A stretch of DNA of 64,000 nt from Blepharisma stoltei ATCC 30299 (Eukaryota > Protista > Ciliophora): positions 930,001 to 994,000 of the forward strand of contig CBFDEM010000036.1 in the NCBI GenBank assembly GCA_965603825.1, in the 5' to 3' direction. Both the position numbers and the translations under genes were made by a program. Shown in pieces: positions 21,691 through 40,494 of this stretch; the first letter of the stretch is position 1, and every line of letters starts with the position of its first letter. The notes beneath the pieces are model-generated. The model was given only the letters and a program-made list of their open reading frames with translations. It did no database searches and was not told the origin of the DNA.

Positions 21691-22260
21691 TATTTTTATA
21701 ACCAATTGCTGGATTCCCTCCATTGCAAAATCCTCATCAAATTCTAGAAGCTGTTGTCCTCTTTAACCAAAATGCAAATTTGCGCAACTGCAAAGCTTTA
21801 AAGAAATTTTGCAGTTTTTTACGTCAGCATTATCAGTCAACAATGCAGGAGCTTGAAAATTTGCAGCACCAAGATAATAACCCTTTTCACTCCAGCTCTT
21901 CAAGCTTCTAAAGCTAGTTTAAGAAAATCTCAATGCATTAAGTGCATAATTGCTCAATTTGCTTAGAATCACGGCATGCATGCATATTTTCCATGAGAAT
22001 TGTTTGAGAGCATTGATAGAAAACGGGGCGAGGAGGGCTAAATGCCCTATTTGCAGAAAATCTCTCATAGGCATATTTTGATGCTAAATGGCTGCAAAAA
22101 TTAATATTTTAATTTCTGATAAATATTTGCATTTTATGTATGAAATTTAAGCAGCGCTCTATTTTTTAAAGGATTTTGCAAACGAATACAAAATGATAAG
22201 GCAATATAAAAAAGGACGAATAAATAAATATTAAAAATTGTCCAAAAATTGCAAATGAGT
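21691..22260 (+). pseudogene. 3' relic of the 35490-38150 receptor-RING gene plus its downstream flank
   Basis: Colinear with ~37740-38340 (attctagaagctgttgtcctctttaaccaaaatgcaaatttgcg shared); indels, stops, deletion inside the RING. Confidence 0.85.
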
Positions 22261-24014
22261 ATTATTTAAAAAGAATTTAAAAAAATTATACTTTATTTTG
22301 TTAGGCACTTTTAAATCATTAAGTCTAAAACAAATAATAGAGCCAAGATCTCTAGTACACTGCTTTTTGATTTCATATAGAGTAATAGTGTCCTATAAGG
22401 TTTATTTTATCTTTTTAATGGGGAGGTAGCAGAAATTATTTTATGATATTAGGTTTATAAAGGACTGATATTATCTAATACCTATTAACGCAAGCGAAGT
22501 ATATATAGAACTTCTTTTTAGATTATTCATTTTGATGCATCAATTGCAATCCAAATGTTTGTTATTCTAATTATGGATATATCGCCATTGTGATACTAAG
22601 TGAATACTTTAAAAAATCATGAATTTGCAGTAATATTTTATAAAAGTTAGTTTTATATGGCTTAAATATTGTAAATATGTCTAAAAATTATAGAAGAATT
22701 AATTAAAGTTATAAGATGATATGATAAAGATTATACTTTTGCTTTTTATTACAGCGTTTTGCAAGTTAAGAATCTCATACCCTCCAGAACTATATAAACT
22801 TTATCCTGATAATATCGTCCCTTCTGTTACTGCTAATCTTAGAAGATTTCCAACTTACACTCAAGGTAGTGTCGGATTTTTACCAAACAATACAAATCCA
22901 TGTGACAAAAGCTCATGACCTCAATTTTCTAATTCACAGTTTTTGCTATTATGAATACAACTTGCGATTACTCAACTGTTGTTCAAATTGCCCAAGAAAG
23001 AGGAGCTCAAGGTGTCATTTTTGTGCTGAATTTGACTAATTCAAGATTAAAAAAAGTTTTGATATCTCCAGGCATTCATACCAATATATTTGTTGCAGGT
23101 ATTTCAAATGGGTATATTAATATATGAAGAAAATTCAAGCAGGGTACAATATTGGTTGAATTCGATCACGACTGGATATTTCAGGAAAAACCAAGAATTT
23201 CGATATCACTTACAGGAAATTATAATTATGATAACGAATGATATTTGTATCTATTTCCTATTTATAAAAATGATGTGGATATAGACTTATTCTTTAATTA
23301 TTCATTTTCATGTTCTGATTGTCACCCAAATGACTGTTATTATAATAATAAATACTGCATGATTGATGACATAGATAATGCTAATGGAAGAGATATGATT
23401 GATAGAACACTATTGGAAATGGCTTTGTTTGAATATACACAATTACACTCCCTATATTTAGGCACTTTTGCTATATTTTTACATGAACTAGGAAATTCAT
23501 GCTCTAGCGATTACTCAAAGAATTGCAGTAGTAATGTTTTAAATTGGCTAAAAGTTGACTTAGAAGAAATTCAGAGTAGAATTGACATGTCCTGAGAATC
23601 GTATAAGAATGAAGAATACGTAGATAATTATGAACTCAGGAGGCAATATAACAGATGGATAAATAAACAATATTTTGAACCTATACCAAGCATTACCATA
23701 GGTAATATTACGCTTGGCTTAGATCAAGGATACGGTCTCCAAACATATATATGCAATTATATTAGATATACATCATATGTTTGTGATGATACCTGCAGTA
23801 AGGATTGCGCAATTGACGATTTAAGCGATGGCTATTGTAATAAAAATTGTAAAACAGAATCTTGCTTATATGATATTCAAGACTGTAACAGTTTTTTTGA
23901 TTTTTGTGATGACTTTCACGATGATGTTTGTCGTTATAGCTCTGGTGGCGATGAAGATTTAAGCAAAACTTCTATAATACTAATTGCAGTGTTTAGCTGT
24001 GTTGGATTTTGTTG

Positions 24015-24029
24015 GTAATTTTTATTTAG
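24015..24029 (+). other. 15-nt intron in TM of receptor copy 1
   Basis: GTAATTTTTATTTAG, in-frame TAA. Confidence 0.85.
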
Positions 24030-24129
24030 TTTTGGTTGTTGTTGTTGTTGTTATTACTTTTGCTATTGTATTAAATTCATAAAAGATTACTATCGGGATC
24101 GAGAAAATCAGAGCCCTTCAGAAATCCGA

Positions 24130-24468
24130 GAGTTTCCTCTGCCTCACTTGCCACCCTCACCTCCCTCACCTCCCTTGCCTCCCTCACCTCCCTTGCCTCG
24201 CCCACTTCCCTCACCTTTATTTCGCCTATCTTTACCGATTCGTAGATATTTACCTAGAGTAAATGTTCCAAGCTCTTCTTCTGATAATGATAGTCAAAAT
24301 AGTTCTGAGTTTCCTCTGCCTCACTTGCCACCCCCCTTGCCTCCCTCACCTCCCTTGCCTCGCCCACTTCCCTCACCTTTATCTCGCCTATCTTTACCGA
24401 TTCGTAGATATATACCTGGAGTAAATGTTCCAAGCTCTTCTTCTGATAATGATAGTCAAAATAGTTCT
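24130..24468 (+). repeat. Internal tandem duplication of the Pro/Ser-rich cytoplasmic linker (177 + 162 nt)
   Basis: EFPLPHLPP...LSLPIRRY..VNVPSSSSDNDSQNSS occurs twice. Confidence 0.9.
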
Positions 24469-25406
24469 GAAGATGAAATTGGTTCAGAGAGTAGCAGGCA
24501 ACTTAACAATAGTTCTGAGGTTAGAACTAGTATTCAAAACAGTTCTGAAAATAATTCAGATTATGGGTTTTTTGGAGATGCGACTTGCTCAATTTGCTTT
24601 GATGAAATCACAGAGGAAAATATGAAAATTACAAAATGCAAGCATATTTTTCACAAAAATTGCTTAAAGGTGTGGACAGATACGAAAGGTAGAAATGCGA
24701 AATGTCCTAATTGTAATGAGAAAATTCGTTAGAAGATGCTACTTTTATTAGCTTTAGTTTAAGTTAAGAATATTTTATAATAAGTTGGCAAATTTTTTCC
24801 GTGTTTATCAAGAGCAATTAAGTAGATGATTTTTTTTATTTGTAAAATCCAATTTATGCGCTATTGTATGGAGTGCAATGCAGTTCTATTTTAATGACGT
24901 TTTGCCTATACATTTTCTGAAGCATCGTGCTGTTTTTCTATAAGTTTTATTAAATGCCTTGCTACTAGTTTTAGCGCTTGTATCGGCACTTTAAAAATCA
25001 TTAAGCCTAAATCAAGTAATAGAGCCAAGATCTCTAGTATACTGTTTTTTGACTGCCAGAAAGAGTATATGAATTTAAATAGTCTCCTTCAGAGGGCTAA
25101 TTTTATCTTTTAATGGGTGTGGTAGCAGAATCATTTTATGAAGGAGGTTTATAAAGACTGATATTATCTAATGCTTAATAGCGTAGTCAAAGATAGAACT
25201 TCTTTTTAGATTATTCATATTGATAAAATAATTGCAACCCAAGCACTTGCTATTCTAATTATGGATATATCGCTATTGTGATTCTAAGTGAATACTTAAA
25301 AATCATGAATTCGTAGCAATATCTAATAAAAGTTAGTTTTATATGGCTTAAATATTGTAAATAGGTCTAAAATTTATAGAAGAATTAAATAAAGTTATAA
25401 GATTAT

Positions 25407-27252
25407 ATGATAAAGATTATAATTTTGTTTTTTATTACAGCATTTTGCAAGTTAAGAATCTCATACCCTCCAGAACTATCTAATCTTTATCCTGATAATA
25501 TCGTCCCTTCTGTTACTGCTAATCTTAGAAAATTTCCAATTTACACTCAAGGCAGTGTAGGATTTTTACCAAACGATACAAATCCATGTGACAAAAGCTC
25601 ATGGCCTCAATTTTCTAATTGCACAGTGTTTGCTATTATGAATATAACTTGCGATTACTCAACTGTTGTTGACATTGCCGAAGAAAGAGGAGCCCAAGGT
25701 GTCATTTTTGTACTAAATTTGACTAATTCAAGATTAAAAGAAGTTTTGATATCTACAGGCATTCAGACTACTATATTTGTTGCAGGTATTTCAAATGAGT
25801 ATATTGATATATGAAGAAAATTCAAGCAGGGTACAATATTGGTTGAATTCGATCACGACTGGATATTTCAGGAAAAACCAAGAATTTGATATCACTTACG
25901 GAAAATTATAATTATGATGCAGATTTTATTAAGGAATGATATTTGTATTTATTTCCTATTTATAAAAATGATGTGTATATAGACTTATTTTTTAATTATT
26001 CGTTTTCATGCTCTGATTGTCACCCAAATGACTGTTATTCTAATAATAAATACTGCATGGTTGATAGCATAAATCATGCTAAAGGAAGAGATATGATTGA
26101 TAGAACATTATTGGAAATGGCTTTGTTTGATTATACAAGAGATCACGACCTATACTTAGGCACTTTTGTTATGTTTTTATATGAATTAGGAAATTCTTGC
26201 TCTAACGATTACTCAGAGAATTGCAGTGGAAATGTCTTAAATTGGCTAAAAGTTGACTTAGAAGAAATTCAGAATAGAATTAGCAAATCCTGAATATCGT
26301 ATATGAATGAAGAACACGTAGACAATTATATACTTAAGAGTCAATATAACAAATGGATAAGTAAAAATTATTTTAAGCCTATACCAAGCATTACCATAGG
26401 TAATATTACGCTTGGCTTAGATCAAGGATACGGTCTTCAAACATATATATGCAATTATATTTCATATACATCATATGTCTGTGATGATACCTGTAGTAAG
26501 GATTGCACAATAGACGATTTAAGCGATGGCTATTGTAATAAAAATTGTAAAAAAGATTCTTGCTTGAATGATATTCAAGACTGCAATAGTTTGCATGATT
26601 TTTGTGATGACGCGCACAAACATGTTTGCAGTTATAGTTTTGATGTGATGAAGATTTAAGCAAAACTTCTATAATACTAATTGCAATATTTAGCTGTGTT
26701 GGATTTTGTTTGTGGTAATTTTTATTTAGTTTTGCGCTTAGTTATGTCTTTTATCATTTTTTGTCTAAATACTTAAAAAAGCGCGACCAGGATCAAGAAA
26801 ATCAGAGCCCTTCAGAAATCCGAGGGTTTCCTTTGCCTCTCTCGCCTCCTTCATTTCCCTTGCCTCCCCCATCTCCTTTCCCTTTTTTACAGATTCCTAG
26901 TCCCCCCATCATACATTTTCCAGATCTTATTTCTGATAATGATATTCAAAATAGTTCTGAAGATGAAAGTGGTTCATACAGAAGCAGGCCACTTGACAGT
27001 AGTTCTGAGATCAGAATAAGTTTTCAAATCAGCTCTGAAAATAATTCAGATTATGGGTTTTTTGGAGACGCAACTTGCACAATTTGCTTTGATGCAATCA
27101 CAGAGGAAAATATGAAAATCACAAAATGCAAACATATTTTTCACAAAGATTGCTTAAAGGGGTGGACAAATGCGAAAGGTAGACATGCGAAATGTCCTAA
27201 TTGTAATGAGGAAATTTTACAAGATAATATCGATATGCCAGCTTTCGTTTAA
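25407..27252 (+). pseudogene. PA/VSR-like-LNR-TM-RING-H2 receptor, copy 2 (two frameshifts)
   Basis: 1-nt deletions at ~25887 and ~26645 relative to paralogs; intron 26715-26729; RING intact. Confidence 0.8.
26715..26729 (+). other. 15-nt intron in TM of receptor copy 2
   Basis: GTAATTTTTATTTAG. Confidence 0.85.
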
Positions 27253-27904
27253 GTTAAGAATATTTTATAATAGTTGGCAAATTTTTAAAAAAAAACCTAG
27301 GTATCATAGCATTTTCATAGAGTAGTAATAAGTCTTTGAGTAGACTTTCAAGATCTCCAGAGCACTGCTTTCTAATTATTAAACAGAGTATATAAATTAA
27401 AATAGAGCGCTAATTTTATCTTTTTAAGGGAGAAGACAGCAGAAATTATTTTATGATGCTAGCTTTATAAAGGACTGATACTATCCTATACTTATTAATG
27501 CAAGTGAAGATTCTTTTTTGATTATTCATATTGATGCATTAATTGCAACCCAAATGCTTTTTATTCCTATTATGGATATAAATTAAAATAGTCTCCTATA
27601 GAGGTTTAATTTTATCTTTTTAATGGGGAGATAGCAGAAATTATTTTATGATATTAGGTTTATAAAGGACTGATATTATCTAATACCTATTAACACAAGC
27701 GAAGTATATATAGAACTTCTTTTTAGATTATTCATATTGATGCTTGTTATTCTAATTATGGATATATCATCATTGTGATTCTAAGTGAATACTTTAAAAA
27801 TCATGAATTTGCAGCAATATTTTATAAAAGTTAGTTGTATATGGCTTAAATATTGTAAATATATCTAAAATTTATAGAAGAATTAATTAAAGTTATAAGA
27901 TTAT

Positions 27905-29731
27905 ATGATAGAGATTATACTTTTCTTTTTTATTACAGCCTTTTGCGAGTTAAGAATCTCATACCCTCCAGAACTATATAATCTTTATCCTAACAATATT
28001 GTCCCTTCTGTTACTGCTAATCTCAGAAGATTTCCAACTTACACTCAAGGTAGTGTTGGATTTTTACCAAACGATACAAATCCATGTGTCAGAAGCTCAT
28101 GGCCTCAATTTGCAAATTACACAGTGTTTGCTATTATGGATATAACTTGCCATTACTCAACTGTTGTTCACATTGCCGAAGAAAGAAAAGCTCAAGGTGT
28201 CATTTTTGTGCTGAATTTAACTAGTTCAAGATTAAAAGAAGTTTTGATATCTCCAGGCAGTCAGACCACTATATTTGTTGCAGGTATTTCAAATGAGTAT
28301 ATTGATATGTGAAGAAAATTCGAGCAGGGTGTAATATTGGTTGAACTTGATCGCGACAGGATATATTCGGAAAAACCAAGAATTTCGATATCACTTACGG
28401 GAAGTTTTATTCATGATGCAGATTTTATCAAAGAATGATATTTTTATCTATTTCCTATTTATAAAAGCGATGTGGATATAGACTTATCCTTTAATTATTC
28501 ATTTTCATGCTCTGATTGTAGCCCAAATGACTGTTATTCTAATAATAAATACTGCATGATTGATGACATAAATCATTTTTCAGGAAGAAATATGATTGAT
28601 AGAACACTAATGGAAATCGCTTTGCTTGATTATATAAAAAATCACGATATATTTTTAGGCGCTTTTGCTATATTTTTATATGAACTAGGAAAATCTTGCG
28701 AATATGATTACTCGAAGAAATGCAGTGGAAATGTTTTAAATTGGCTCAAAGTTGACTTAGAAGAAATTCAGAATAGAATTGACAAATCCTGGATATCAAA
28801 TATGAATGAAGTACGCGCAGATAATTATATACTCAGAAGCCAATATAACAAATGGATAAGTAAAAGCTATTTTGAACCTATACCAAGCATTTCCATAGGT
28901 AATATTACGCTTTGCTTAAATCAAGGATACGGTCTCCAAACGTATATATGCAATTATATTTCATATACATCATATGTCTGTGATGATACCTGTAATAAGA
29001 ATTGCACAATTGGCGATTTAAGCGATGGCTATTGTGATCAAAATTGTGAAACAGATTCTTGCTTTAATGATATTCAAGATTGCAATAGTTTGCTTCATTT
29101 TTGTGATGACATTCACAATCGTGTTTGTAAATATATCTCTGATGGCGGTGATGAAGGCTTAGACACAGGCTCTATAATAGCAATTTCAATTTTTAGCAGT
29201 ATTGGATTTTGCTTTTGGTAATTTTTATGTAGTTTAAGTGGTTTTGCTGTCCCTTATCACTACATTTCTAAATACTTAGAAAAGCGCTATTGGGATCGAG
29301 AAAATCGGAACTCTTTAGAAATCCAAGATTTTCCTTTGCCTCCCTCATTTATCTCACCTCCCTCACTCCCTGCCCATCCATTGGGTGATCCTTTACAGAT
29401 TCCTATACATATGCCTAGAATAAATTTGCCAGATTCTTCTTCTGATAATGATAGTCAAAATAGTTCTGAAGATGAAATTGGTTCAGAGAGTAGAAGTCAA
29501 CTTGAGAGTAGTTCTGAGATCAGAATTAGTATTCAAAATAGCTCTGAAAATAAGTCAGATTATGGGTTTTTTGGAGACGCGACTTGCTCAATTTGCTTTG
29601 ATGCAATCACACAGGAAAATATGAAAATCACAAAATGCAAACATATTTTTCACAAAGATTGCTTAAAGGCGTGGACAGATGCGAAAGGTAGAGATGCGAA
29701 ATGTCCTAATTGTAATGAGGAAATTCGTTAG
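27905..29731 (+). CDS. PA/VSR-like-LNR-TM-RING-H2 receptor, copy 3 (intact)
   Basis: Single frame with TGA=Trp and 15-nt intron 29218-29232; signal peptide, LNR CNKNCTIGDLSDGYCDQNCETDSCFNDIQDC, TM, RING-H2. Confidence 0.88.
29218..29232 (+). other. 15-nt intron in TM of receptor copy 3
   Basis: GTAATTTTTATGTAG, in-frame TAA. Confidence 0.88.
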
Positions 29732-30195
29732 AAGATAGTAACTTTTACCTGTTTTAGCTTAAGTTAAGAATATTTTATAATGAGTTGGCAAAAATTTTAC
29801 TTTGCTTATCAAGAGCAATTAAGTAGATAAATTTTTTTTTATTGTAAAATCTAATTTACATAAATTAAAATAGAGCGCTAAGTTTATCTTTTTAAGGGAG
29901 AAGATAGAAGAAATTATTTTATGATGTTAGCTTTATAAAGGACTGATACTATCTAATGCTGATTAACGCAAGCGAAGTAGATATAGAGCTTCTTTTTTGA
30001 TTATTCATATTGATGCATTAATTGCAACCCAAATGCTTTTTATTCCTATTATGGATATATCGTCATTGTGATTCTAATTAAATCTTTAAAAACCATGTAT
30101 TTACAGCAATATCTTTTAAAAGCTAGCTAATATGGTTTAAATATGTGCAAATATCTAAAATTTATAGAACTTTTAATTAAAGTTTATAAAATTAT

Positions 30196-31887
30196 ATGAT
30201 AAAGATTATACTTTTGTTTTTTATTGCGGTCTTTTGCAGGTTAAGAATCTGATACCCTCCAGAACTATATAAGCTTTATCCTAGTAATATTGTACCTTCT
30301 GTTACTGCTAATCTTAGAAAATCTCCAAGACACTCTGAAGGTAATGTAAAATTTTTACCAAATGATATAAATCCATGTGACGAAGACTCATCCCCTGAAT
30401 TTTTTAATGGCACAGTGGTAGCTATTGAGAATATAACTTGTGATTACTCAACTGTTATTAGGATTGCCCAAGAAAAATTAGCTATAGGTGTCATTTTTGT
30501 ACTGAATTTGCCTGATTCAAAATTAAACGAACATTTGATATCCGCAGGCAGTGAAACCTATAAATTTGTTGCAGGTATTTCAAATGAGCATATTGATAAA
30601 TGAAAAGAAATTAAAGAGGGGGAAATATTTATTGAGTTTGATCGCGACTGGATATATACATGGCACAGACCAACAATTTCGATATCACTTACCGGAAATT
30701 ATAACTATGATGCAGATTTTATTAAAGAATGATATTTGTTTCTAATTCCGATTTATGAAGGCGATGTTTATATAGACTTGTTTTTTAATTATTCATTTTC
30801 ATGCTCTGATTGCAGCCCAAATGACTGTTATTCTAATAATAAATACTGTATGATTGATGGCGTAAATCATGCTAAAGGAAGAGATATGATTGATAGAACA
30901 CTATTGGAAATGGCTTTGCTTGATTATACAAAATATCACGACCTATATTTAGGCGTTTTTGCTATGTTTTTATATGAACTAGGAAATTCTTGCTCTAACG
31001 ATTACTCTGAGAATTGCAGTAGAAATGTTTTAAATTGGCTAAAAGTTGACTACGAAGAAATTCAGGGAAGAATTAAAAGTTCCTGAATATCGGATATGAA
31101 TGACCAATACGCAGATAATTCTATACTCAGTAAACAATATGACGGATGGGCAGATAAAAGTTATTTTAAACCTATACCAAGCATTACCATAGGTGATATT
31201 ACGCTTGGCTTAAATCAAGGTTACGGCTTCCAAACATATATATGCAATTATTTTTATTTTTATTATTCATCTTCAACAAATTTATGTGATGATAAATGTA
31301 CTTATACTTGCTTTATATGATATTTAAACAATGGCTATTGTGATGTAGGTTGTAAAACAGATTCTTGCTTTAATGATATTCAAGACTGCAATAGTTTGCA
31401 TGATTTCTGTGATGACGTGCACAATCATGCTTGTAGTTATAGTTATGGTGGCGATGAAGGTTTAAGCAAAAAATCTATAATTCTTATAGCATTTGGATGC
31501 TTTGGATTTTGTTTGCTGTAATTTTTACTCAGCTTTGTTTTTTGTTGTGTCTATTGCAATTATTTTTGTAAATACTTGGCTGCGCGCAAAAGGGAACAAG
31601 AAAATCAGAACCCTTCAAGTTCTGAAGACGAAATTGGTTCAGAGAGGAGCAGGCCACTTGACAATAGTCCTGAGATCAGAATTAGTATTCAAAACGAGTC
31701 TGAAAATAATTCAGATTATGGGTTTTTTGGAGACGCGACTTGCTCAATTTGCTTTAATGCAATCACAGAGGAAAATATGAAAGTCACAAAATGCAAGCAT
31801 ATTTTTCACAAAGATTGCTTAAAGGCATGGACAGATGCGAAAGGTAGAAATGCAAAATGTCCTAATTGTAATGAAGAAATTCATTAG
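30196..31887 (+). CDS. PA/VSR-like-LNR-TM-RING-H2 receptor, copy 4 (intact)
   Basis: ATG 30196, single frame through five TGA, intron 31518-31532; lacks the Pro-rich linker. Confidence 0.88.
31518..31532 (+). other. 15-nt intron in TM of receptor copy 4
   Basis: GTAATTTTTACTCAG, in-frame TAA. Confidence 0.88.
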
Positions 31888-32520
31888 AAGATAGTAACTT
31901 TTACCTGTTTTAGTTTAAGTTTAGAATATTTTAATAAGATATACCCCTCATTATTATAATTTTTTTATTCAGCTGCTTAAAGCTTTACTTTCAGGTAAAG
32001 GTCTGGACATTTGAGAAGTCTGAATGGATTGCTTCTACTTTAGAAAGAATAAAGCTGAGTCATCAATGGAAAAAATAATAGCAACGGATACTATACATTA
32101 GTGCATGGCAGCAGAATAACGAGACAAATTGATTGGTCTTCACTGATAGCCATACTTGCTAGCTCAAAAAAAAGCCTCAGATTTATTTCTTCAAGATTTC
32201 TTACCTAGAATGCTTTTATTTATTTTGAGTTTATACTTTTATCATTAGCTATAATATATAAACTGTATATTTTGGTGAGTTTATGGATTTTTGCTATTTC
32301 TAATGATGAAATAGAGTCTCGCACTTAACAAAGATCAACTTACAGGAATCCCTCCTGGAATTATGTCAGGCAGAAGCACCTTAAGCGTCCCTGTGCTCAG
32401 TAAAAAAAAGCTGCCTCTATTAGTAGTCCAAAAAGGTTCAGAAATGGTGAAGCCAACAATCTCATATGCAAGTGCTTTATCTCAACCAAGAAATTAAATT
32501 CGTAGAAATAAATAATAAAT

Positions 32521-33138
32521 ATGCAGTCAAAACAGATTAGAGTTCACAAAGGCGAGATTGAGAAATCTGAATAACTCATCAGATTTATATGCCTATAAGT
32601 CCTAACTGTGAGTGTCCAGATGATGTAGTTAATTTTAATAATTTTTTAAGGAGATTGCCACACAGATATAAAGTTGCTATTACTGGGAACCATGACTTGC
32701 TCTTTGATGAAGAAAAATTTCCAACCCTTATTCATAATTTTAGCTTGAATCCAAGAGGCTGCCAAAGCTCTGCTAACTAACTGTATTTATTTAGAAGCTA
32801 GCGTAGAAATTTTTGGGTAAAAAATTTGGGGAAGTCCATGGACCCAGAAAAAAGGAGGGCTATTGCTGTAAAATAGAAAAAAAATCTGAAGATACAAAAA
32901 TTTTGACTACCCATTGCCGCCATATACAATTCTTGATGGTTGTGATGATGGTTTTCATGCAGGATGTGAAGAATTGAAGACTGTTGCAGAAAGCATTAAG
33001 CCAAAAGTCAATATTTTTGGACATATTCATGAAGCGTACGGGGTGTATAGCAATGACTTCACAATTCATAAATGAGTCTACCTGTGAATTAAGATATAGA
33101 CCGACAAGCCTCCAATTATTTTTGACTTGCCTAGGTAA
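32521..33138 (+). pseudogene. MPPED-like calcineurin-fold metallophosphoesterase pseudogene
   Basis: LPHRYKVAITGNHD, LLTNCIYLE, G*KIWGSPW, GCEEL...PKVNIFGHIHEAYG spread across frames with stops; N-terminal DxH motif absent. Confidence 0.8.
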
Positions 33139-33517
33139 TCTTAATATTTATAAATGGAACTTTTTAATTATTTTTATTGTGCTTTAATATAGAGAAAGAA
33201 GATTGACGATTTTGGCGAAAAAATTGAAGGACAACGTGATGACATACCAAATTACTCGATGCACAAAGAAAAGAGCTCTGAATTGGGGAAGAACGAAGTT
33301 CCATTTTTTAACTAAATTCAATTTTATTATTAGGGGGCTAGTCTTTTTATAATAAAATGCAGTCTGTTCCAGCATTAGATGCAACTGACGAAAAGAATAA
33401 GCTTAATAAGCTTCTTAGCTTAGCGTCTAATTAAAAAATTATGGTTAAATATAATTAATATAGAATGCTTACAATATCTTTGAAGATGAATTCTGATAGA
33501 AATAAATTTTTATGTAC

Positions 33518-33961
33518 CTAAACATATTCGTCTACGAAGGATATGCTCTCTCCAGAATTAGCCTGATAATGAGCGGCGTCAATAAATGATTGCAACTTAC
33601 GTAACCCATCAAATTTATAATCCACGCCCACTTCTGGGGTATTACGACAAAGATTTTCCAATACCCTTCTGATTCTTGCATCCTCCAATAGCAAAACTTT
33701 CTTTATTTCTCTTAATTCTTCATAAAGCATATATGTTCGTGGGTAAATTTCTCCAGACTCCTTTATAAGTTTATATATGCTTTCTGCAATTGTTTCGATA
33801 TCAGAATCACTCAAACTCTTGATGTGGTAACGTTTATACTTTTCAATTTCTTTCATAACAACTAAATGGCGCCGAAGTTCATAATCATCGTCTTTTTTTA
33901 GATTTATATTGGAATTGGTAGTCCTGCTAAAGATATTTTGAAAAATTCCCCAAAAACTCAT
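33518..33961 (-). CDS. Hypothetical protein
   Basis: 147-aa ATG-TAG ORF with AT-rich leader; no motif recognised. Confidence 0.55.
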   Translation of the reverse strand: MSFWGIFQNIFSRTTNSNINLKKDDDYELRRHLVVMKEIEKYKRYHIKSLSDSDIETIAESIYKLIKESGEIYPRTYMLYEELREIKKVLLLEDARIRRVLENLCRNTPEVGVDYKFDGLRKLQSFIDAAHYQANSGESISFVDEYV

Positions 33962-34029
33962 TTTATTTATTATATTATAAAAATGGAATTTTAATTTCGA
34001 TTGAGATCACTAAAGGCTCTAGCTTTGTG

Positions 34030-34950
34030 ATCAAGTTCTTTCAAACATTTAAATGACTATTGCAGCTACAAGTATTGAACAAATTGCACTGATTATGTCT
34101 TAAATTGGTTGTATATGCACTAAAAAGAAATTAAAAAAATTGTTGACTCATCTTGGCAGGCTGATGACAAATTTGCAGACAATGATTTTCTCAGAAGCCA
34201 AGCAAGTAAACGGAAGGGAAAAAACATACAAGTTGTCCCATCAATCTCAATAAATGGCAGTTTATATCTAAATGGCTTGGTTAGTATTTAAAATTGCTTA
34301 AAGATATTCTCCTATTCATATTGGAGCGAGTATGATCTGTTCTTCAATAGTGATATAGAAAACTGAATCTGTCAACTCAATGTTGAACAGATGGATGCGC
34401 ATACTATTTTTGTGATTGCAACTATAATGGTTTTTGTGATAAATGGATTCATTGCCGTAATGATGATGATTCTGAGTCAGAGGGAAAAGCTTGACAATTG
34501 AGATACCTATTTTTCACTGGCATAAGGTTTATTTAGGTCTATTTGTGTTCTAGCTCTCTGCATTTGATGCATAAAACGACGCTGAAAGTCTAATAATCAA
34601 AATAATCAAGAAATTTAGCAGCCTGAAAATCAAGATAATATGATAATAATGATTGTTGCACAGCAATCTTGGTGACTATCACGTTATTCTTGGAGTATTC
34701 CAGATATAATTGGTAATGGTGAAGAGATAAATCGTTCTGCAGAGCTTCCAACAATTGTGTGTAGAATGGGCATAAGAAGTAGCCGTTTTGAAAATGATAA
34801 AAGCATGGGTTATGATTTCTATGGAGATCCTGTGTAGCACATTTTGGAGATCTAAAAGAAGTTAATTATGATTTCTATGAAATTCTGCTTACAAAATTTG
34901 CCTAATTTTATCTCCAAAATAAAATATTTTCCACAAAAAATTTTGCAGCA
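34030..34950 (+). pseudogene. Old relic of the receptor-RING family (3' half)
   Basis: NCTDYVLNWL...SSW...ADNDFLRSQ...VPSISING aligns to NCSGNVLNWL...KSW...DNYILKSQ...IPSITIG; LNR end DGCAYYFCDC; YDFYGDP and IFHK remnants; in-frame stops. Confidence 0.75.
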
Positions 34951-35489
34951 TGATGCTCTTATGTAGCAAAAGGCTAATATATTTAAAATAATAATCTTTT
35001 AAGCTAATTTTTTAAAGAAAAGATACTAAAATGAATTGATTTAAAGTGTTTTTAAGAAAGGCAATTTTATTTTAATAATAAAAATGAAACATTGAAGACT
35101 TACTATTTCCGTTTTATTTTTTTATTACTACGAATTCTTTGCTGGGAATATAAAATACTTTAAATTGATAAGCAAATTATTGCTTATCATATAAAGAGCT
35201 AAAAACCTAAGTAATTTTTGCATTATGATAACGAAAGTTCCTATTAAAAATTCTTCTTCATTTAGAGTTTTTATACTCAGCTGCCTGAGTTTAAGCCTTT
35301 TGTTTAATATTTTTGTGCAAAATAGAAAGTTCATTATATCCGAGTATCCCTAAATATAAGCATCCTATTTTTACTGTAAATTAGAATTTTTGCTATTGAG
35401 TTTATTTATATGAAGCCATCACGCAAATAAAAAAAAATATAGAATATTTAATAAAGCAGTTATCATAATAATAAATATTAGGAAATCTC

Positions 35490-38150
35490 ATGCTAAAAAT
35501 CCTCAATTTATTATTAGCTATAGCATTTTGTACTTTAAAGCTTTTATCTCCCCCAGAACTAGTTAAGCTTTATCCTAATGGAACTATTCCATCTATTACA
35601 ACAAATTTAGAAAAAATACCCAAAAGCATAATTAATGGGAATGCTGTGTTTTTACCAAGCTCAGGGTGTAATTATACCTATTATCCTTCGAAAATAAATA
35701 TAATTACAAATTCAAGCTGTGGAATTCCTTCGGCTGCAAATGTAACCGGCATTATTATTGTTCTGAATGTAAGCGATTCAGAACTAAATTCCGTTTCTAT
35801 ACCTTGAAAAGGTAATGGCTCTATATTTATTGTAGGGATTTCAAATAAATATATTGATAAATGGAAATATTATTCAAACCAGACCATTAATATTTCCTTC
35901 GAGCCAGATTTAATCTCTATAAAGCCAACTCTTACAATTGCACTTAGTGGAGATTATTGCACTGACAAAGATTTCATTGAAAAATTGTATAAATTTTTAA
36001 TTCCTTTAAAAGTAAGTGAGGTGAATATAGAGCTTCTTTTCAATTATTCTACTTGCCAAGCTTGTAAAGCTGAAGGCTGTGCCGAATATTACTGTCTAAG
36101 AGGTATATATGATGAAAATCAAGAAAAATTAATGATTGATAGAACTCTTTATGAGCAAGCCATGCTTGATTATGTTGTCAAAAATAATGCATATTTTGGA
36201 GATTTTGCTATGTTTTTACACTTTACTATAAGCTACTGCAAATACGACTACACAGACAGCTGCCATAAAAAAATTCTTGAATTGCTGAATATCAATACTA
36301 TTATTATAAAGTCGATTAAAGAAGAAATAAATGGAGACTCAATTATTGCAAGCCAAATACAAAGTTGGGCAAAAAGAAATATCAAAGATAACAATGCGAT
36401 TTATATTGATAATACAGAGGTGTTGGAAATAGACGGTATTAAAGATTATATTTGTAGACGCTTAGGGCCTTCGTCGGATATATGCAGTGGAAGGTGCAGC
36501 AGCCAATGCTATATGATGGAAATAGATGATCATGTTTGTGATTCTCGGTGCAAAACAGATTCCTGTGCGTATGATATCGAGGACTGTAAATTGGAAGAAA
36601 AGACAATTTTAAAATCAGAATCAGGCTCAAGCTCAAATTGAAATATAGCACGAATGCTAGGATCAGGCTCAAATTCAAACCATGGAAAAGACTCAGGCTC
36701 AAATTCAGACCATGGAAAAGACTCAGGCTCAAATTCAAACCATGGAAAAGACTCAGGCTCAAATTCAAACCCTGGAAAAGACTCAGGCTCAAATTCAAAC
36801 CCTGGAAAAGACTCAGGCTCAAATTCAAACCCTGGAAAAGACTCAGGCTCAAATTCAAACCCTGGGAAAGACTCAGGCTCAAATTCAAACCCAGGATCAG
36901 GCTCAAATCCAGGAAAAGACCCAGGCTCAAATTCAAACCCAGGATCAGGCTCAAACCCAGGCTCAAATTCAAACCCAGGACAAAACTCAGGATCAAACCC
37001 AAACCCAGGGCATGGTTCAAGTTCAAACTCAGGAAAAGACTCAAAATCAGACTCAAGTTCTGATTCAGGCAACACTACAACAATCCTTATAGCAATTCTA
37101 GTTCCAGTAGGAGTTTTTGCATGCACTTTGTCAATAATTTATTGCCGTCGATATTATAAAGAAAAAAATATTCACAAAAATACTCAAAATCAGACAGCAG
37201 AGTTAGCCTCAAGTGGATATCACCAGCCTGCACAGTCAATACAAGCACCAAGACCAGCCCAGCAAGAAAACGAGTATTCTGCCAATCATCGACAAGTTTC
37301 AAGGCAAAATCCACAAGTAAATCAGCAGCCTTCTCGTCGTAATTTGATTGTAAGACAAGAGGATAATCAGCCCAGCTCTCGGTCTCGTAACAATAGGAGC
37401 AGACATCAGCCTTCTGGAATTAATAATTATGAGCCAAGAATAGACCAGTCTGTTAGCCTGGAACAAAATTCAAGGCCAAATTCTCAGTGAATAGCCCCTG
37501 TAGCTCCAATACAAAACCCTCAAGAAATCCAACAGGCAATTGCTTTCCATAATCAGTATGTCTGAATGCCTCCAATACAGAATTTGCAAGAAATTCAGCA
37601 GGCTATTGATTTTTATAATCAGTATGCTGGGCTACCTCACATACAAAATTCTCTCGCAATTCAGCAGGCAATTATTTTCTATAATCAATATGCCGGATTA
37701 CCTCCTATACAAAATTTAAGAGAAATTCAGCAGGCTATCTATTTTTATAATCAATTTGCTGGATTCCCTCCATTGCCAAATCCTTATCAAATTCTAGAAG
37801 CTGTTGTCCTCTTTAACCAAAATGCAAATTTGCGACCATTACAAAGCCCTCAAGAAATTTGGCAGTTTTTACGTCAGCTTTATCAGTCAGCAATGCAGGA
37901 ACTTGAAAATTTGCAGCGTCAAGCTAATAACCCTTTTCAGCCATCAGCTCCTCAAGCTTCTGAAGCTAGTTCAAGAAGAAGCTCAGTGCATGAAGTGCAT
38001 AATTGCCCAATTTGTTTAGATGATATTGATCAGAGCGAGATTAAAATTACAGCATGCATGCATATTTTCCATGAAAATTGTTTGAGAGTATGGATAGAAA
38101 ATGGGGCTAGGAGGGCTATGTGCCCTATTTGCAGAGCATCTCTTTCATAG
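35490..38150 (+). CDS. Divergent PA/VSR-like-LNR-(Gly/Ser/Asn stalk)-TM-RING-H2 receptor, copy 5 (intact)
   Basis: Four ORFs in one frame joined by TGA; signal peptide, PPEL.KLYP, MIDRTLYE, LNR, TM ILIAILVPVGVFACTLSIIYC, RING CPICLDD...CMHIFHENC...W...CPICR. Confidence 0.88.
36660..37062 (+). repeat. 30-bp coding minisatellite (GKDSGSNSNP)n
   Basis: Unit GGAAAAGACTCAGGCTCAAATTCAAACCCT, about 7 near-perfect copies followed by degenerate 18/30-nt units. Confidence 0.95.
37503..37898 (+). repeat. 66-bp (22-aa) coding repeat, about 6 copies
   Basis: Units like PPIQNLQEIQQAIDFYNQYAGL upstream of the RING. Confidence 0.85.
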
Positions 38151-39078
38151 ATATTTTAATGCTAAATGCCTGCAAAAATTAATATTGATCTAATTTCTCA
38201 TAAATATTTGTATTTTATGCATGCAATTTAATTTGCGCTCTTTAAAAATTTATTTTTACAGAATTCTAAGAAACTAATATCAGAATGATAAGGTGAATAA
38301 GTAATTATCAAATATTGCCCAAAAGTCGCAAATAATAAGCTTTAGTGAATTTACTAAATGGAAGCATGCTTGGCCAACAAAGTTGGACGAGTCTTATCTC
38401 AATTGGATTTCACACCCTGAAGCTCATATCGAGCTATTAGTAAGGTTTTGCTATATAATTTATAATGCCAAAAGATTAAATTGGTTAATTGCAAGAAAAG
38501 AAGCTTATTCGTGGTGATTGAAAAAAATATATTTTATTAGATGCATAATAAAATGACAAATTTCATCCTGAAGCTTGCTAATTTGTATTAGAGTTTGATT
38601 CTCTTCTTTTATGAATTCAATGCAATTTTTTCATTTATACACGATTTTCTGAAATTCCTTGATATTCTTATCCTTGTGCCATAAAATAATTTGCATATAA
38701 CTTGCATTTAATTGTATAAATTAAATATGTGGAGAATCAATTCGTCCTTTAACTCTTAAGTATCTGGCGCAAGAGGATTCTAGTTAAATGAAATAAAGGT
38801 ATAATCATCCTCAGAGCTATTAAAAAATTCAATTTCTTATATAAATAATTAACTAAATACTATTATTAGTGTTTTTTGAAGCAGGCTATTAACGCAAAAG
38901 CATTTTTCTATTAAAATCATTTTTATCATACCAAAATTTCATGAAAGTAAAATTCAAGTATAATTCCTGAAATAATTTTTAAAAAAATAGTGAAAATGAT
39001 AAAAATAATGCTCAAATCTAATGGCATATTTAATATATAAATTTTACCTTATGATCTCAGCATTTCTTTTGCATTTCT

Positions 39079-40467
39079 TTATGCATTTCTATATTTAATT
39101 AGATACACTGGGACAATTTGGTCTGTAGAAAACAGCACAAGGATGCCTTCTGGAAGTTTCAGATAAGCATGCTGGTTTGGGTTATTTAAATCAGCTGGAT
39201 TTGCAGCTACAGTATTGTTCCCTAAATTGCCTTTAAAAGCTTTACAGCACAAAATAGTGTCTCCAACAACATAAGAAAACGAAAGTTGTGGATCTGTAGC
39301 TGTATAAACTCCATACCCAAAGGCTGTATTTGTCTTAACTGCTACCCCTGGAGTCACCCCACCAATGCCAAACCCGTTTTTTGCAATATTATCATAAGCA
39401 GCAGCACTAGAGCCATGCCATACATAAATATCGTCTTCTCTATCAGCCAATGTCTTTGAAATTTCTTCTTTTTTTGCTTTATACCTCATTTCTACAGCCT
39501 TATTAATGATCATCTTTGCAGACACCATTACTTTGTCACGCGCATTCTGCTCAAATACAAATTTTGCGTTTAAATATTCTCTTTCTAATTTATTTTTTGG
39601 TTTAGAAAAATCAGCTGGGACAGGTAAATCTACAACTTTCGCCTGATCTTCACTGGCTGCCAAGCACGAAATCCCAATATGCGACTCTTCTAAACAGTCA
39701 ATGCAATATTTTTTCCCGCATTCTGTACATTTAATCTCAGCACTAGCTGTCGGTGTTTTTATTCTCGCGTCACAGTTTGGGCACAAATTAAACAAAAATC
39801 CTTCAATTTTTAAATCCTCCCAAATTTTCTTCAATAAATCTTTCTTTTCGAAACAAGCTTGCTCTGCAATTCAACTTGCCATTATCCTCTTGCAGTTTTT
39901 ATTAGGACACTTTAACGAGAATTTCGCCGCTTCAATTGCATTTTGTATGCAAACTTCACAGAAAATATGATTATCAGCACAAACAGAATAAGCCTGACTG
40001 CTTATATTATTGCAAAAATTATTACACTGAGCGTGCGTAGCTCGACTTCATTTATCTGCATTTACTGCATCTTCCCCAACGTAACTAGCTACTTTTTTTT
40101 CTTCTAAGTCTGGGTGATAGAGAATCGAGCCTGGAATTCTATGCCCAGCGCATGCAGGGCATTCATAATATTTTCCCAACCCAGACATCCCAAATTGTCA
40201 AGTTATGAAATTGATTAAGCAATCATTGCAAATTTTATGAGAATTTGCGCAGTGGTAAGGAACATGGTAATTGTTAGGGTTTTCGAGAAAAAATGATGGC
40301 ATGCCTGGAAACATAAAAATGTGGGACGAGCACTGGAACTTTAAAGGGCTTATTTTTACTTGTATTCTGTTACTGATTATATAATCGATTAAAGCGGTTG
40401 CTCATTCCGTGTTTTTGCTGGCCACTGCTTGCTCTAGGGAGTCTGCTGCTTGTTGTCTATGATCCAT
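39079..40467 (-). CDS. RING-RING-IBR zinc-finger protein fused to a PARP-like ADP-ribosyltransferase domain
   Basis: With TGA=Trp from ATG 40467: CANSHKICNDC..CPAC; CADNHIFCEVC..CPNKNC; IBR CPNC..CTECGKKYCIDCLEESHIGISC; ART motifs WHGS, FGYGVYTA, SYV, QIVPVYLIKY. Confidence 0.8.
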
Positions 40468-40494
40468 TATTTATTTATTTATTAGTCTATAAAT

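Follow-up and report, generated by a model that had tools for sequence, protein, structure and literature searches.

The window analysed here is a 64,000-nucleotide (nt) stretch of the ciliate Blepharisma stoltei (C36:930001-994000 of a 41.46-Mb assembly in 64 contigs, to which all genome-wide counts below refer). It carries a tandem cluster of genes for predicted membrane proteins in which the lumenal part of a vacuolar sorting receptor (VSR), made of a protease-associated (PA) domain and a thioredoxin-like central domain, is joined to a Lin12-Notch repeat (LNR), a transmembrane (TM) segment and a cytosolic RING-H2 domain. Reading UGA as tryptophan lengthens the long open reading frames of the window, and the published HiFi macronuclear genome of this species has UGA as tryptophan and introns of 15–16 nt (PMC9942806). 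The sequence-only reading that preceded this analysis had described seven related units on the + strand, and all seven lie where it placed them (Table 1): intact genes at 27905 (copy 3), 30196 (copy 4) and 35490 (copy 6), frameshifted genes at 22721 (copy 1) and 25407 (copy 2), and relics at 21691 and ~34010. It had overlooked five short relics in the spacers, detected here by tblastn as frameshifted bits of the start of the central domain, so that the cluster comprises 12 pieces, 3 of them intact and 9 broken or relics.

The birth-and-death evolution proposed earlier describes this arrangement well, with tandem gain and loss leaving intact genes among broken copies and relics. A 15-nt GT..AG intron interrupts the TM segment of copies 1–4 (at 24015, 26715, 29218 and 31518), and translation with UGA as tryptophan followed by splicing confirmed that the genes at 27905 and 30196 are each open once this single intron is removed. 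Every spacer preceding copies 1–4 carries a relic of the central-domain start, which indicates that the repeat unit is 'relic + gene'; the same spacers, where promoters would be expected, are partly built from decayed coding sequence of another family member. The 280 bp upstream of copies 1 and 3 differ by 3.9% (other pairs by 11–19%) while their coding regions group otherwise, and this mismatch suggests gene conversion or unequal crossing-over; a runs test for recombination among copies 1–4 was not significant (p=0.39), with informative sites in conflict (24/16/10). Copy 6 is organized as a degenerate PA domain, thioredoxin-like domain, one LNR, repeat stalk, TM segment, Gln-rich repeats and RING, and it alone has the 10-residue Ser/Gly/Asn repeats of the stalk on the extracellular side (36640-37060) and the 22-residue Gln-rich repeats inside (37500-37800).

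Table 1 Pieces of the receptor-ligase cluster, in window coordinates
Feature	Position	Strand	Details
Relic, duplicate of the copy 6 3' end (end of Gln-rich repeats and RING) and downstream DNA	21691..22256	+	frameshifted, with stops; 79% nt identity to 37740-38333; tblastn E 2e-38
Spacer relic 1, beginning of another family member's VSR thioredoxin-like domain	22400..22600	+	frameshifted; matches copy 4 residues 171-237 (tblastn E 6e-7)
Copy 1	22721..24732	+	1-nt deficit ~22934; intron 24015-24029; Pro-rich linker duplicated; RING 24586-24714
Spacer relic 2	25090..25290	+	sequence comparison
Copy 2	25407..27252	+	1-nt deficits ~25887 and ~26645; intron 26715-26729; RING 27076-27204; middle piece is database protein P0001
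Spacer relics 3 and 4, in tandem	27400..27790	+	sequence comparison
Copy 3, intact, 603 aa	27905..29731	+	PA ~27950-28369; VSR thioredoxin-like ~28370-28981; LNR 28991-29083; RING 29585-29713
Copy 3 intron	29218-29232	+	splits the TM segment
Spacer relic 5	29870..30070	+	sequence comparison
Copy 4, intact, 558 aa	30196..31887	+	intron 31518-31532; without Pro-rich linker; RING 31741-31869
Relic copy, covering the later half of the thioredoxin-like domain through the pre-RING motif	34010..34840	+	stops, frameshifts; matches P0016 (tblastn E 7e-10)
Copy 6, intact, intronless, 886 aa	35490..38150	+	identical to database protein P0003; RING 38004-38132

At the level of sequence we could confirm the predicted architecture of a signal peptide, a VSR-type PA domain, the VSR thioredoxin-like domain, one LNR, a TM segment and a RING-H2 domain, and the parts named in the sequence-only reading (VSR-derived PA and central domains, LNR, TM and RING-H2) therefore stand. 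Local comparisons were based on joined copy models with an X at each frameshift, stop-free pieces or database proteins served as queries in external searches, and signal peptides were called from hydropathy alone. RING-H2 exceeded the Pfam cut-off in every copy scanned (42.7–44.3 versus 27.3 bits). The six Cys and the DxxDC pattern of an LNR are present in all five window copies, where this repeat stays under the Pfam cut-off for PF00066 (best 15.3 versus 21.2 bits); it scores above it in the relatives P0002 and P0004. A profile built from LNRs of the genome picks out the repeat at E 4e-6 to 8e-4 in copies 1, 3 and 6 and misses it in copies 2 and 4, and the single window LNR matches repeat 1 of the four found in related genes on contig C57.

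The VSR homology of the window copies is transitive, running through their relatives, but on profiles and structural models it is firm. Searched alone against Pfam, the window ectodomain pieces gave no PA or VSR match, and the direct match of copy 6 to a plain VSR is weak (E 0.002). The copy 3 piece matches P0002 (E 2e-32), P0004 (1.5e-12) and P0006 (1.8e-6); P0004, P0006 and P0018 pass the cut-off for VSR_TRX (PF25011), P0004 also passes those for PA and LNR, and seven of the eight aligned members match VSR_TRX at E<=0.1. The PA domain is above cut-off in P0004 and C57a, and is alignable but degenerate in the window copies. A profile made from fusion members only finds VSR1 at E 4.7e-16 and the VSR1 PA domain at 0.004, and among PDB entries it matched the VSR1 PA and no RNF-type PA; a fold search with the copy 6 model matched both VSR and RNF-type PA domains, weakly. 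With VSRs in the alignment the copy 6 model matches VSR1 along its length (E 1e-10; Atlas TM-score 0.67), and with VSRs excluded it still matches the VSR1 central domain with Z 17.4 and a root-mean-square deviation of 3.2 over 197 residues, and the resemblance to this domain noted in the sequence-only reading is supported by both profile and fold. The fold also resembles DsbA/GILT, yet VSR1 is clearly top-ranked and a redox enzyme was rejected as a candidate.

Related genes place the cluster in a wider family. The B. stoltei genome has ten plain VSRs, each with PA, central domain, TM segment and a tyrosine-motif tail and without EGF, and fusions outside C36 comprise three four-LNR copies on C57 and one LNR-less copy on C50. 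The C57 and C50 genes each have a single ortholog, with conserved synteny, in SRR24908292, from an organism that also reads UGA as tryptophan. In the C50 fusion (L022:2877-4145) neither a signal peptide nor a PA part can be recognised; L025 (P0006), its syntenic ortholog, is complete, and the C50 gene is possibly truncated in this strain. A further fusion, with two LNRs in addition to PA, central domain, TM and RING, is encoded after removal of a 15-nt intron on an environmental contig in the standard code (L023/L024), whose code and intron size are compatible, at a guess, with a heterotrich such as Fabrea salina (PMC9004412). Copies 1–4, C57, L026 and L023 all have a 15-nt intron of phase 2 within the TM segment, a position common to the LNR-bearing members that indicates one origin. 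The idea that this stop-carrying intron is a special decoy switch is unlikely, because a phase-2 intron that starts with GTAA gives TAA automatically, as does the L023 intron. In a tree of the PA and central domains (23 rows, none omitted; midpoint root only), all 12 RING-bearing sequences are separated from 11 plain VSRs by a branch with support of 100/100, and within the LNR-bearing Blepharisma fusions the five copies from C36 group together (100/98), a position that marks the C36 array as derived, an expansion of an older family at this locus. Between the two species the C57 ortholog pair is 33–36% identical, compared with 72% for the flanking TBC gene, 69% for the flanking aspartic protease gene and 40–48% for other neighbours.

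Word-index protein searches and a metagenome scan turned up fusions in Blepharisma-like sources and in the L023/L024 organism and nowhere else, with none from Stentor, Paramecium or Tetrahymena; the same searches overlooked known members too, so that the range given here is a minimum. Atlas searches, covering clusters of 50 or more, returned PA+VSR_TRX(+EGF) clusters and none with RING or LNR. No description of the architecture was found in the literature searched, outside which most subscription journals lie, and the PA-thioredoxin-LNR-TM-RING arrangement is apparently undescribed. On these comparisons the fusion family is shared with other heterotrich-like ciliates, and the C36 cluster is hence no local novelty.

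Residues of known function have fared differently in the two halves of the protein. The RGxCxF loop of VSR1 contains Arg95, which is essential for cargo binding (PMC8740768); its Arg and Gly are absent in all five window copies and in the three C57 copies, and the loop is kept in six of the ten plain VSRs and in the L023 fusion. The acidic PDPD calcium loop is also altered in the B. stoltei fusions. The RING of all copies retains the C3H2C3 zinc ligands, the Trp, the Pro and the CxIC isoleucine, the equivalent of RMR1 I234, which is required for E2 binding (PMC12552968). The cytosolic tails of the fusions span 112–336 residues, end in the RING and have no tyrosine motif, compared with 27–46 residues with a tyrosine motif in the ten plain VSRs, and the ectodomains have 4–10 N-glycosylation sequons.

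The fusions thus share with VSRs (VSR1/BP-80; PF02225 and PF25011, including the EGF-less VSRs known in alveolates, PMC5264500) a homologous PA and thioredoxin-like central domain and a type I topology. Unlike VSRs, the window copies have an LNR lying between central domain and TM segment and have lost the RGxCxF and PDPD loops, and a long tail ending in RING-H2 takes the place of the VSR tail of ~30 residues with its tyrosine motif. With the PA-TM-RING ligases (RMR, RNF13, RNF167, GRAIL, RNF43 and ZNRF3) they have in common a lumenal PA, one TM segment, and a cytosolic C3H2C3 RING with the E2-contact Ile, and by analogy the logic of these ligases, in which lumenal recognition is coupled to ubiquitination, likely holds for the fusions too; unlike in these ligases, the PA is VSR-type and is set apart from the TM segment by the thioredoxin-like domain and LNR. 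The six-Cys LNR with DxxDC is like that of Notch (its negative regulatory region, NRR), PAPP-A and GlcNAc-1-phosphotransferase: C57 members match the Notch2 NRR and PAPP-A LNRs, and the family profile matches GNPTAB LNRs. The fusions differ in having one to four LNRs and no EGF, NOD or ankyrin domains.

The sequence-only reading had taken the protein for a hybrid of VSR and RMR in which LNR replaced EGF, and neither part of this origin is upheld. The PA is VSR-type, all 11 PA matches in the genome are plain VSRs or a fusion, and no RMR/RNF13-type gene was found among them, so that RMR was rejected as a donor; since no such gene was found, convergence on the PA-TM-RING design is more likely than descent from an RMR/RNF13-type protein. 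EGF repeats are absent from the fusions and from the ten plain VSRs, and LNR-TM-RING occurs as a separate cassette. One such gene, L062, encodes a stand-alone LNR2-TM-RING protein of 212 residues that aligns nearly end to end with residues 361–559 of the L023 fusion at 35% identity; this minimal gene matches the C-terminal cassette of the fusions and lacks the PA and thioredoxin-like ectodomain, a TM intron and any obvious signal peptide. Of the RINGs most similar to that of the family, at least five others sit 250–450 bp downstream of LNR matches on the same strand (C53, C31, C36, C44 and C20), and there is a tandem group on C51. The simplest reading of these sequences is that a VSR ectodomain captured an LNR-TM-RING cassette. 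LNRs are abundant in the genome (at least 150 scored Pfam matches among 485 candidates) and occur in several unrelated architectures; the expansion (C30, C8, C36, C39, C28, C53 and others) includes long multi-LNR surface proteins at 7–8 kb spacing, minimal LNR-TM-RING genes and LNR multi-TM proteins.

We next consider divergence among copies 1–4. By amino-acid identity the RING ranks highest (86%), followed by the ectodomain (75%), the linker (65%) and the TM segment (55%). The earlier statement that the ectodomains diverge more than the RINGs is correct for these two regions (42% versus 24% variable columns; Fisher p=0.014), but the TM segment (66%) and linker (54%) exceed the ectodomain. The ratio of nonsynonymous to synonymous change (dN/dS) by counting is 0.86 (0.67–1.11) for the ectodomain and 0.38 (0.16–1.02) for the RING, with maximum-likelihood values of 0.65 and 0.50; over the whole gene it is 0.63–0.80, with a RING dN of 0.06 and synonymous divergence near 0.2. 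Under single-hit codon models, comparison of M1a with M2a for the ectodomain gave p=3e-5, with ~6% of sites at w~7. Allowing double-nucleotide changes weakened this signal to p=0.29 (0.16 with sites near gaps left aside); the TM and cytosolic part shows the same M2a pattern, and adjacent differences are in excess in the non-coding spacers too (47 versus ~29 expected, the pairs being non-independent). No hypervariable patch was found (p=0.28). About 46% of ectodomain sites are constrained (w~0.06–0.12), all 18 structural Cys are invariant and the remainder is near neutral. A fair summary of these sequences would be that the RING and fold scaffold are conserved and constraint is relaxed elsewhere.

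The reading that we favour, with a probability of about 0.6, is that these proteins are type I membrane ubiquitin (E3) ligases that use the VSR-derived module to bind a client in the lumen or at the surface, and ubiquitinate the client or themselves for ESCRT sorting. In this heterotrich-ciliate family the VSR lumenal PA and thioredoxin-like module is joined to an LNR-TM-RING-H2 cassette, and the protein would reside at the surface or within the secretory or endolysosomal system. Client binding by the ectodomain would not use the classical Arg cargo loop, absent from the window copies; the LNR may act as a calcium-stabilised spacer, and the RING would recruit an E2 for ubiquitination of the client or of the receptor. 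Sorting by ESCRT would then run one way, to lysosomes or food vacuoles, and replace the VSR recycling tail with its tyrosine motif, a working mode like that of RMR, RNF13 or ZNRF3 but reached separately, and the C36 array would be a recent, species-level amplification under relaxed constraint. Several observations weigh against this. Copies 1–4 have Asn in place of the Arg that follows the last Cys of the RING, and this substitution can reduce RING activation; their TM segments are weakly hydrophobic and Cys-rich; the PA domain of copy 6 has low confidence (pLDDT, a per-residue model score, below 50) when modelled without VSR sequences; and the reverse direction, in which loss of the ectodomain from a fusion yielded the minimal LNR-TM-RING genes, is also conceivable.

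The alternatives overlap in part with the favoured reading and with each other. The sequence-only reading had seen a diversifying recognition system, with copies 1–4 under positive selection for varied prey, symbiont, parasite or mating ligands and coupled to ubiquitination. The excess of ectodomain over RING variability, the single-hit M2a signal, the lost cargo loop, the separate tandem expansions on C36 and C57 and the low identity of the C57 ortholog pair beside its two flanking genes could all result from such selection, but the signal is lost under double-nucleotide models and is not specific to the ectodomain, the spacers have the same excess of adjacent differences, there is no hypervariable patch, the tests rest on four sequences of which two are broken, and other neighbours are also just 40–48% identical between species; we therefore regard it as improbable. 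Sorting of soluble hydrolases or granule cargo could instead have been retained, with the RING ubiquitinating only the receptor for its passage beyond the Golgi. RMR requires its own E3 activity for post-Golgi trafficking (PMC12552968), the L023 fusion retains the RGxCxF loop, the central domain, which holds a second cargo site in VSR1 (10.1101/2024.12.07.627339), is the best-kept part here, and an aspartic protease gene flanks the C57 cluster. Such a role is nevertheless unlikely, as the loop Arg that is essential in VSR1 (PMC8740768) is missing from all B. stoltei fusions, the PDPD loop is altered and the genome still has ten plain VSRs that could do this.

Similarly doubtful is a reading in which the C36 array consists mostly of superfluous duplicates in decay, with no function of its own, and only the C57/C50 orthologs matter. 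Nine of the 12 pieces are broken or relics, whole-gene dN/dS is 0.63–0.80, LNR number is down from four to one and the PA motifs have decayed; against this, the ectodomain Cys are invariant, nearly half of the ectodomain sites are constrained, RING dN is 0.06, and copies 3, 4 and 6 are still open despite the synonymous divergence among copies 1–4. The three 1-nt deficits of copies 1 and 2 could also be assembly errors, leaving five intact genes, as they are single-base losses and reading across the breaks keeps all Cys without in-frame stops. We give this little credence, because the assembly derives from PacBio HiFi reads of a nearly homozygous strain (PMC9942806), true relics surround these copies, and removal of a 15- or 16-nt intron cannot mend a -1 frame.

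Other genes lie in and beside these clusters. A broken calcineurin-like metallophosphoesterase gene is located within the C36 cluster (32500-33140, +), with its GNHD and GHIHE motifs in separate frames, and a gene adjoining the cluster (39082-40470, -) combines an IBR domain with a PARP catalytic domain in one fusion, each scoring over the Pfam cut-off. Near the C57 cluster, L015:1622-5759 has four tandem multi-TM genes of ~235 residues that are SWEET/MtN3-like by eye.

More speculatively, and with low probability, a VSR may have become, in heterotrich ciliates, an expanding surface or phagosomal receptor-ligase repertoire, in which paralog-specific, positively selected sites recognise ligands of foreign or partner origin and ubiquitination serves to signal or to clear membrane proteins. 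An immune-like system is not established by the present sequence data; were the recognition-repertoire reading true, ZNRF3/RNF43 control would have a parallel in a protist, possibly one that is also an innate recognition system drawing on a wider LNR-TM-RING family. The above analyses suggest that the receptor-ligase design of a PA ectodomain, TM segment and RING-H2 arose independently, apparently from a VSR and an LNR-TM-RING cassette. The graded series from plain VSR through a fusion with an intact cargo loop (L023) and four-LNR fusions to degenerate one-LNR copies offers a testable case of a recycling cargo receptor turning into a one-way, ubiquitin-dependent receptor, and points to an unstudied family of LNR-TM-RING ligases in ciliates.

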